A stretch of DNA of 63,926 nucleotides, the filler included, from Octopus bimaculoides (taxonomy: Eukaryota), in NCBI RefSeq assembly GCF_001194135.2. It is 6 parts of 6 records of this genome, joined end to end, with 100 filler letters (N's around TTAATTAATTAA, not from the genome) between each part and the next. Parts side by side here need not be neighbours in the genome. Positions count along the whole stretch, not along the records: positions 48,707 to 62,794 come from NC_068987.1; 5 more parts are not named here. The stretch is one strand, 5' to 3'. The translations under genes were made by a program, and so were the position numbers. Below are positions 56,191 to 56,420 of this stretch, one piece after another. Every line of letters starts with the position of its first letter. Position 1 is the first letter of the stretch. Below the pieces are notes generated by a model that was given only the letters and a program-made list of their open reading frames with translations, ran no database searches and had not been told where the DNA came from.

Positions 56191-56420
56191 TGGTGACCCC
56201 CGACGTGATTCGAACACGCAGCCCGCTGAGCTACAATAACCCACTTCTTATAAAGTGGTGACCCCCGACGTGATTCAAACACGCAGCCAACTTAAAAAGT
56301 TCATATAACCCACTTTCTTATAAAGTGGTGACCCCGACGAAGAAACAAACGCAGCATGGATTCTGGACTACCAACCTATAACTGGTGAACCCCGACTAAA
56401 GAACAAATGCGGCCATGGAG
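56191..56420 (+). other. Tandem array of four tRNA-Trp primer-binding-site-like units (TGG at 56191, 56256, 56326, 56383)
   Basis: TGGTGACCCC(C)GACGTGATTCGAACACGCAGCC is the reverse complement of GGCTGCGTGTTCGAATCACGTCGGGGTCA-CCA, the 3' part of eukaryotic tRNA-Trp including CCA, with one extra C. Units 1-3 are each preceded by TAACCCACTT(T)C(C/T)TATAAAG. Confidence 0.85.

Follow-up and report, generated by a model that had tools for sequence, protein, structure and literature searches.

Tandem, over-long tRNA-Trp primer-binding sites behind an LTR of Octopus bimaculoides, probably produced by read-through of the primer tRNA

In the textbook account, the primer-binding site (PBS) of an element with long terminal repeats (LTRs) is 18 nucleotides (nt) long since 1-methyladenosine at position 58 (m1A58) of the primer transfer RNA (tRNA) stops reverse transcriptase, and read-through of this stop is held to be lethal to the complementary DNA (cDNA). 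The plus strand copies 18 nt of the primer with a normal stop at m1A58; if synthesis runs on past that base, the cDNA ceases to match its partner strand (PMC8599865). Two groups that use tRNA-Trp as primer, the avian sarcoma/leukosis viruses and the CsRn1 clade of Ty3/Gypsy elements, have the canonical 18-nt PBS, and the CsRn1 clade is defined by a CHCC gag signature together with the tRNA-Trp PBS (PMC2582038). Here we describe a locus in a stretch of Octopus bimaculoides DNA (63,926 nt, filler included; the whole stretch is called the window) at which four tandem sites complementary to tRNA-Trp follow a 362-base-pair (bp) repeat. This locus resembles the avian viruses and CsRn1 elements in its primer, in the first 14–18 nt of the site (TGGTGACCCCGACGTGAT) and in the position of the site behind the 5' LTR, and the CHCC-type gag and DUF7041 of the CsRn1 clade also occur in the metagenome relatives. 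It differs from them in an unbroken complement of 33 nt (28–50 nt in other loci) and in having two to four or more tandem sites, each with a piece of the LTR tail. We consider it probable, though well short of assured, that the region comprises the 5' LTR, PBS array and leader of a tRNA-Trp-primed family and that the array arose by read-through of the primer followed by aberrant strand transfer.

Several other systems share one or another of these features. Lentiviruses conserve complementarity to nt 22 of tRNA-Lys3 by way of synthesis past an unmodified A58, but only 4 nt are added there, with a second stop at m5Um54 and no duplication, and longer read-through is a dead end (PMC8599865). In Ty1 and Ty3, base pairing between element RNA and primer is not confined to the 3' end of the tRNA and takes in the T arm (PMC5371799), and Drosophila Gypsy has two separate tRNA-Lys2 binding sites (PMC1635307). 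Unlike the array described here, these contacts are separate short boxes, partly at the 3' end of the genome, with no contiguous tRNA copy and no tandem LTR-PBS junctions. In vectors engineered by Voronin and Pathak to carry two PBSs, initiation and plus-strand transfer reportedly occur at either PBS and the intervening segment is deleted or kept, which is the behaviour that we propose for array length, but these vectors are artificial and their PBSs lie far apart. Colicelli and Goff (1986) are said to have found circular retroviral DNA with tRNA sequence between the LTRs, and Ohshima et al. (1993) reportedly put forward a "strong-stop DNA" model for the tRNA-derived short interspersed elements (SINEs) of squid and octopus. 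In both cases primer tRNA with its CCA is copied beside U5, as here, but the circles are a dead end and the SINE model is a hypothesis, whereas the present product occupies the leader of an LTR family that propagates. We found no description of a contiguous tRNA copy longer than 28 nt or of an array of LTR tail plus PBS in the literature searched, which covers the field incompletely; curators of repeat databases may well have seen such arrays already.

The four units begin with TGG at 56191, 56256, 56326 and 56383, at spacings of 65, 70 and 57, just as the first-pass annotation of this DNA had described them, and Tandem Repeats Finder reports a period of 65 nt over 56169–56339 (2.5 copies, 85% matches). 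The anatomy of the locus is as follows.

55826–56187, + strand: 5' LTR of a high-copy family, 362 bp, TGTAGTAAC...CCTATA (from read depth and random flanks)
56139–56186, + strand: predicted U5 terminal hairpin, 48 nt, self-complementary; its 3' arm is the LTR tail copied before units 2 and 3
56188–56190, + strand: spacer AAG between LTR and PBS (from sequence; LTR end from clipped reads)
56191–56235, + strand: unit 1, a 33-nt complement of tRNA-Trp positions 76 to 45 (one extra C) and a 12-nt tail, CGCTGAGCTACA (from alignments and depth)
56236–56255, + strand: repeat of the terminal 17 nt of the LTR, followed by AAG
56256–56304, + strand: unit 2, a 33-nt tRNA complement (TCGA changed to TCAA) and a 16-nt palindromic filler, AACTTAAAAAGTTCAT
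56305–56325, + strand: repeat of the terminal 18 nt of the LTR, followed by AAG
56326–56374, + strand: unit 3, a perfect 14-nt PBS core (four C), a decayed extension, AAGAAACAAACGCAGC, and a 19-nt copy of the leader
56375–56382, + strand: 8-nt remnant of LTR tail and spacer (CCTATAAC)
56383–56414, + strand: unit 4, a PBS core with an inserted A and a decayed extension
56415–56486, + strand: leader (5' untranslated region), ended by the assembly gap 56487–57117 (depth 200–300 up to 56475)

Units 1 and 2 read TGGTGACCCCCGACGTGATTC(G/A)AACACGCAGCC. For comparison we used a tRNA-Trp(CCA) that ARAGORN recognised in one metagenome contig (L011). Against the reverse complement of this tRNA plus CCA, the two units match over 33 nt with one extra C (five C against four) and one mismatch at tRNA position 47, and the match runs from CCA along the 3' strand of the acceptor through the whole T arm into the variable loop. 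The first-pass annotation had thus traced the course of the complementarity correctly, while its length of about 32 nt gives way to 33 nt with an extra C rather than a clean 32-mer. The T loop differs (TTCGAAT against TTCAAAT in the L011 reference), and because some metagenome loci show the same difference, it is probably a variant of the host tRNA; a search for the host tRNA-Trp in reads clipped at the edge of the tRNA-like part yielded only variants of the family. Beyond the 33 nt, the unit 1 tail matches the tRNA further in 7 of 12 positions in register, or in 9 of 14 with the variant found in about half of the family copies, which bears out the earlier description of this match as weak.

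The remaining two units are shorter. Unit 3 keeps a perfect 14-mer and unit 4 a 13-mer with an inserted A. Both units retain a decayed extension (...ACAAAC-GCAGC) as well, and on this account all four units derive from one long ancestral unit. Unit 3 includes a copy of the first 19 nt of the leader, and unit 4 is 79% identical to unit 3 over 58 nt. A block of 20–21 nt, ATAACCCACTT(T)C(C/T)TATAAAG, precedes each of units 1–3, in agreement with the repeated upstream sequence of about 20 nt seen at first pass, and CCTATAAC precedes unit 4. Since the 13-mer, with up to two mismatches, is expected 0.05 times in the whole window, a chance origin of the units is excluded.

Every unit carries CCA, which eukaryotic tRNA genes do not encode, and neither ARAGORN (no tRNA gene) nor Rfam (no tRNA or SINE match) finds a tRNA at the array. 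These observations uphold the view that the units are PBS-type copies of mature tRNA with its CCA. They bear equally on the rival proposal that the units, read on the minus strand, are pieces of a tRNA-Trp gene, of a tRNA retropseudogene or of a tRNA-derived SINE and have no link to an LTR. That proposal can draw on the B-box-like GTTCGAA on the minus strand of each long unit, on a genome rich in tRNA-derived SINE-like repeats (for example 57562–57635, at about 80,000x depth) and on the metagenome contig L011, where a whole tRNA-Trp is followed by CCA in the DNA. The locus nonetheless shows no cloverleaf and no A box at a workable distance; it holds only the 3' part of the tRNA, from position 76 to about 45 with CCA, inside the leader of an LTR; and the units begin exactly 3 nt after the LTR-like 362-bp repeat and are repeated together with its tail. 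A SINE or tRNA gene fragment, named at the outset as the finding that would overturn the PBS interpretation, is excluded by this anatomy and by the position next to the LTR, so that we regard this proposal as largely refuted and highly improbable. As a separate candidate, the unit 1 tail (GTAGCTCAGCGGG on the minus strand) was considered as an A box or D arm and rejected; its distance to the B box is only about 17 nt, and its sequence is not that of the tRNA-Trp D arm.

In order to delimit the repeat upstream of the array, we used reads from about 1/100 of one DNA run of the same species mapped to the region, together with contigs of other runs. In this sample unique sequence has a depth of about 2. 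At 55820–55830, over a few bases, the depth climbs from about 35 to above 800, and contigs ending at this point show unrelated flanks before 55825/55826; depth then remains at 500–1300 along the repeat to 56186. After 56182–56188 about 200 reads turn into unrelated sequence, and the remaining reads pass AAG into unit 1 as depth falls from about 530 to about 250, that is, for about half of the LTR 3' ends. The repeat therefore has discrete ends that lie beside internal sequence in some copies and beside unrelated flanks in others, and the TGG of a 33-nt tRNA-Trp match stands 3 nt behind its end. Because half of its 3' ends abut random DNA and half abut a tRNA-complementary site 3 nt further on, 55826–56187 behaves as an LTR. 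The LTR-PBS junction assumed in the first-pass annotation is thereby borne out: a discrete 362-bp repeat with random flanks on both sides lies directly upstream of the units.

The internal organisation of the repeat includes TATATA at 56061, AATAAA at 56078 followed by GT-rich TGTTGTTT, and a U5 of about 80–100 nt; metagenome Gypsy elements have the same layout, with AATAAA, a U5 of about 50–100 nt and then the PBS. At the 3' end the repeat has ...CCTATA, replaced by ...CTACTA in roughly every second copy. When RNA from 56135–56236 is folded, the predicted energy is -31 kcal/mol (z = -4.4), and none of 200 shuffles folds as well. The predicted structure pairs the LTR tail with upstream TAGGAAAGT in a long U5 hairpin at 56139–56186; the CCACTTT/AAAGTGG hairpin suggested earlier for the repeated upstream sequence is possible, but the predicted fold engages the tail with TAGGAAAGT instead. 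The U5 ends of two metagenome loci, L007 and L017, read TTTTTACAT(T)TAG..., a hairpin, and ...ACCCAG(T/C)TCACTAAAG before TGG, and, across very different hosts, are alike to window positions 56120–56190; the window U5 end compared with them is TTTTACATAGG...ACCCACTTTC(C/T)TA(T/C)(A/T)AAAG before TGG. From this likeness of sequence, L007, L017 and the window family may share a lineage. RNA-seq, with flat coverage and apparently unstranded libraries, detected no transcription start inside the LTR, a spurious open reading frame (ORF) of the LTR used as protein query matched no other genomic copies, and a run from a second organism contained almost none of the family.

The array belongs to the family rather than to this copy. 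Depth is kept at about 250 across the 33-nt match and the 12-nt tail to 56234, and the leader behind the array has a depth of 200–300, so that the equal depth of unit 1 and leader, along with variant junctions in both DNA and RNA, answers the concern that a one-off local duplication had been seen. At 56247–56306, the sequence specific to unit 2, depth falls to 25–50, and most family copies therefore have no unit 2. Reads that join distant positions show the same directly. The joint 56235>56305, which skips 69 nt and leads from unit 1 to unit 3, occurs in 10 DNA reads and 54 RNA reads; other joints skip 76, 132 (unit 1 to unit 4) or 141 nt or run backward by 58, 61 or 65 nt. The skip of 141 with AAGAAA places short-type units directly behind the LTR, and the backward joints of 58 or 65 nt represent additional units of the unit 3/4 type. 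In the consensuses of clipped reads, unit 1 leads into other LTR-tail variants and from there into a PBS of the short type (for example TCTACTAAAGTGGTGACCCCCGACGAAAAA, 40 reads), and identical joints were found in three RNA-seq runs. The usual element thus has one long unit and one or two decayed units, and the window copy has an extra long unit. Roughly 100–250 copies of the family bear a PBS, and there are several hundred LTRs.

These read data also bear on whether the array could be an assembly artefact, in which reads of many family copies were collapsed or chained into a false array of four units. The assembly is a draft, a gap of 631 N lies directly behind the array and the region is high-copy, all of which would favour such an error. 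Every unit-to-unit junction of the window is, however, present in independent read sets and contigs, one 76-nt contig spans 56259–56334 with a single mismatch, depth over the unit 2-specific sequence is 25–50, and variant arrays occur in raw reads of another DNA run and three RNA runs. The chance that the array is an artefact is close to negligible.

Variation among copies distinguishes the units further. The extra C of unit 1 is kept in about 88% of copies as judged from reads, and unit 3 mostly has four C, with a fifth in only about 18% of reads. The TCGA to TCAA change of unit 2 occurs in about 35% of copies and looks, from the substitution itself, like CpG decay. Family copies differ by a 13-nt indel in the leader, which is why we consider that region probably non-coding, and the leader reading frame meets a stop in the family consensus.

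Over-long tRNA-Trp PBSs are not confined to the window family. We searched metagenome contigs for TGG followed by 25 nt complementary to tRNA-Trp, a match of at least 28 nt being required. Of the 20 matching loci, 3 are tRNA genes (L011, and L009 and L014 with tRNA-Glu clusters) and 17 fall into about 12 families. The clusters, at 192–269 of L009 and 7229–7306 of L014, contain a tRNA-Glu(ttc) whose last 29 nt, including CCA, equal those of eukaryotic tRNA-Trp. In the 17 other loci the tRNA is represented by its 3' part alone, CCA being present in every case, and the complement measures 28–50 nt. Most of these loci follow ...ACAT, ...TATAAT or ...CTAAAG, which resembles the end of an LTR. The tRNA was copied as far as position 49, 48, 46, 45, 41, 40, 38, 32, 28 or 27, and these endpoints adjoin m2,2G26, m1G37 and m7G46/D47, known modified bases of eukaryotic tRNA-Trp; endpoints of this kind suit the copying of a mature, modified tRNA. 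A scan of viral contigs for long PBSs gave no match. The longest complement, 50 nt, ending just before position 26, is that of L002 (reverse strand, PBS at 351), in which the PBS is followed by a 571-amino-acid ORF (878–2590) with a NADAR domain and not a gag.

ORFs downstream of the metagenome PBSs match RVT_1, RT_RNaseH_2, Integrase_H2C2, rve, an aspartic protease and the DUF7041 gag; several loci lie at the 5' end of Ty3/Gypsy elements, and the gag of L013 and L017 carries a C-x2-H...C-x3-C motif, the CHCC signature. L003, a full element, has two LTRs and a set of three PBS units, namely a decayed one beside the LTR, a perfect 32-nt one preceded by some 17 nt copied from the LTR tail, and one of 14 nt. 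In L018 at least 45 nt of LTR tail plus PBS are repeated and the long form is found only in the second copy. In L006/L019 and in L008/L013/L016 the PBS restarts from about position 9–10 right behind the extension, more than once in L013 and L016. Altogether a repeated LTR tail plus PBS stands beside an over-long PBS in at least three unrelated families (the window family, L003/L015 and L018), and partial PBS restarts occur in two further families. Over-long, often multiplied tRNA-Trp PBSs therefore recur in unrelated Gypsy-type elements of other animals, and the reading made at first pass for one family is thereby widened.

How might such a site come about? Judged by its sequence, a contiguous copy of 33–50 nt of tRNA that includes CCA and lies in PBS orientation would most simply be the product of plus-strand read-through. 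We propose that plus-strand strong-stop synthesis at some point passed position 58 of the primer without stopping, so that the mature tRNA with CCA would be copied through the T arm into the variable loop and perhaps to the anticodon loop. The over-long 3' end would then be unable to pair with the minus-strand copy of the PBS. The minus strand, for its part, would have continued beyond the PBS by about 8–21 nt and entered U5, reaching the inner stem of the hairpin there, and the over-long plus strand could continue on this minus-strand 3' end by a non-homologous strand transfer or template switch. The product would be a new block of PBS, tRNA extension and short filler ahead of LTR tail, AAG and the old PBS. 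Once two PBSs were present, transfers in the wrong register could add or remove units and array length would change, and the array would then be passed on through the RNA genome. In the window each long unit is followed by a filler of 12 or 16 nt, then by the last 17–18 nt of the LTR, AAG and the next PBS, and not by the leader. A single switch event of this kind would yield a PBS that is both long and duplicated, which would explain why the two features co-occur in the window, L003 and L018. Our confidence in this transfer or template-switch mechanism is moderate. Sequence and reads show directly the anatomy of the locus, its LTR, an array that is present and variable throughout the family, and the recurrence of such arrays in other Gypsy elements; the read-through, the transfer and the choice of the priming unit are inferred from these.

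A rival account invokes tandem duplication at the DNA level in a single master copy, whose leader would have undergone replication slippage or unequal crossing-over before the copy was spread by transposition. The array would then be unrelated to strand transfer, and the long complementarity would have arisen once and been carried along. Units 3 and 4 do look like a simple tandem duplication of 57–58 nt with 79% identity, variation in unit number is typical of any minisatellite, and the extra C common to units 1 and 2 points to mutual copying rather than to fresh copying from tRNA. Duplication leaves the origin of a CCA-containing tRNA copy of 33–50 nt unexplained, however, and it does not anticipate that the pattern of repeated LTR tail plus PBS next to an over-long site would recur across three or more unrelated families, with partial restarts in two more. 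In the window, moreover, the three unit-to-unit junctions differ in their right-hand breakpoints and fillers yet always return to the LTR tail. We regard duplication as unlikely, though it deserves to be kept in mind.

Read-through and aberrant transfer remain our preferred explanation, against which several observations have to be set. The copy endpoints are scattered and do not lie at one stop. In L003 the polarity is opposite to that of the window, the decayed unit being the one that adjoins the LTR. The extra C in about 88% of copies speaks against regular re-copying of unit 1 from tRNA, and because units 1 and 2 both hold it, they were copied from each other; its persistence fits, by analogy, inheritance of the PBS from element RNA, as for Ty1, whose primer sequence is reportedly not inherited (Lauermann and Boeke 1994). 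The reference tRNA-Trp came from L011 and not from the host, and the extra C and the CAGCC segment are judged against that reference. The metagenome scan recovered only sites with a match of at least 28 nt, and its count has no bearing on the frequency of long relative to 18-nt PBSs.

The assignment to a retroelement is weakened on further counts. The LTR begins with TG (TGTAGTAAC) but ends with TA and not with the canonical CA. No second LTR copy was found in the 6.6 kb downstream, a stretch with three assembly gaps, and no gag/pol ORF was found in the piece of the window that holds the array, the next 0.6 kb being the gap 56487–57117; tblastn of that piece with the Gypsy gag/pol ORFs of the metagenome loci gave no match, and no polypurine tract or target-site duplication could be identified for the window family. 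This piece comes from a draft assembly, with 37% G+C and six internal N gaps, the one at 56487–57117 beginning 72 nt after unit 4. The window copy may be truncated or non-autonomous. As for its affiliation, the window family has the tRNA-Trp PBS of the CsRn1 clade, but no gag of it was found; membership of that clade is a lead, drawn from the primer sequence and the metagenome relatives.

A last alternative concerns the persistence of the array more than its origin and is compatible with read-through. The array might be kept because it is useful, either by offering extra landing sites or a longer primer duplex or as a sponge for PBS-directed silencing, with 3' tRNA fragments and pre-tRNA-guided heterochromatin factors as the putative agents. 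Most PBS-bearing copies of this successful family have arrays, as do its transcripts; in unit 1 the initial 33 nt are far better preserved than the following 12 nt; PBS-directed silencing by hosts is documented (PMC7472051; PMC13537249); and HIV-type viruses conserve complementarity to nt 22 (PMC8599865). Units 3 and 4 are decaying, however, and the extension shows CpG decay in about 35% of copies, while additional perfect PBS copies would also give the host more targets. We find retention through usefulness doubtful.

The neighbouring sequence is rich in other repeats. Upstream, ORF pieces at 54945–55199 and 55211–55432 (+ strand) are the remnant of a Tc1/mariner-type transposase (…DLNPIENLW…), and 54700–55700 is a repeat with about 50–100 copies in reads whose positions mostly differ from the family majority. 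Right after the gap, 57118–57300 is another repeat, at a depth of about 600, with no similarity to the LTR or to Gypsy proteins; it was considered as a candidate interior of the same element. The tRNA T-arm-like sequence GGCGGAATTTGAACTCAGAAC lies at 57562–57635, which is a hyper-abundant transcribed SINE-like repeat, its depth reaching about 80,000 in 1/100 of a DNA run and about 25,000 in one run of RNA. A 58-nt direct repeat stands on either side of it (57411–57468 and 57622–57679, 95% identical). Further downstream are a 139-nt inverted repeat at 60050–60397 (90% complementary, 70-nt spacer) and an 87-nt direct repeat at 60607–60693 (360 nt apart), which together look like a foldback element or a miniature inverted-repeat transposable element. 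The microsatellite (AGT)33 occupies 61857–61956, and a 25-nt tandem repeat with 2.2 copies lies at 61602–61655.

If the proposed origin is right, these loci are natural records of read-through products that survived, integrated and spread to hundreds of copies. Their endpoints and junctions would bear on three questions, namely where reverse transcriptase stops on modified tRNA in vivo, how a failed plus-strand transfer can be saved, and whether the source of an inherited PBS is the tRNA or the element itself. Several host silencing systems act by way of the PBS, and PBS arrays therefore bear on that conflict. On the practical side, LTR annotation tools that expect one PBS of at most 18 nt will mis-describe such elements. 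A bolder idea, to which we give a low probability, is that over-long PBSs and their arrays are more than scars and are inherited under selection in a tRNA-Trp-primed lineage of Gypsy elements that spans phyla. In that case a 33-nt duplex and spare sites would secure priming or soak up PBS-directed silencing, the array would grow or shrink in every replication cycle according to the register of plus-strand transfer, and the A58 stop on tRNA-Trp would be leaky in these animals.

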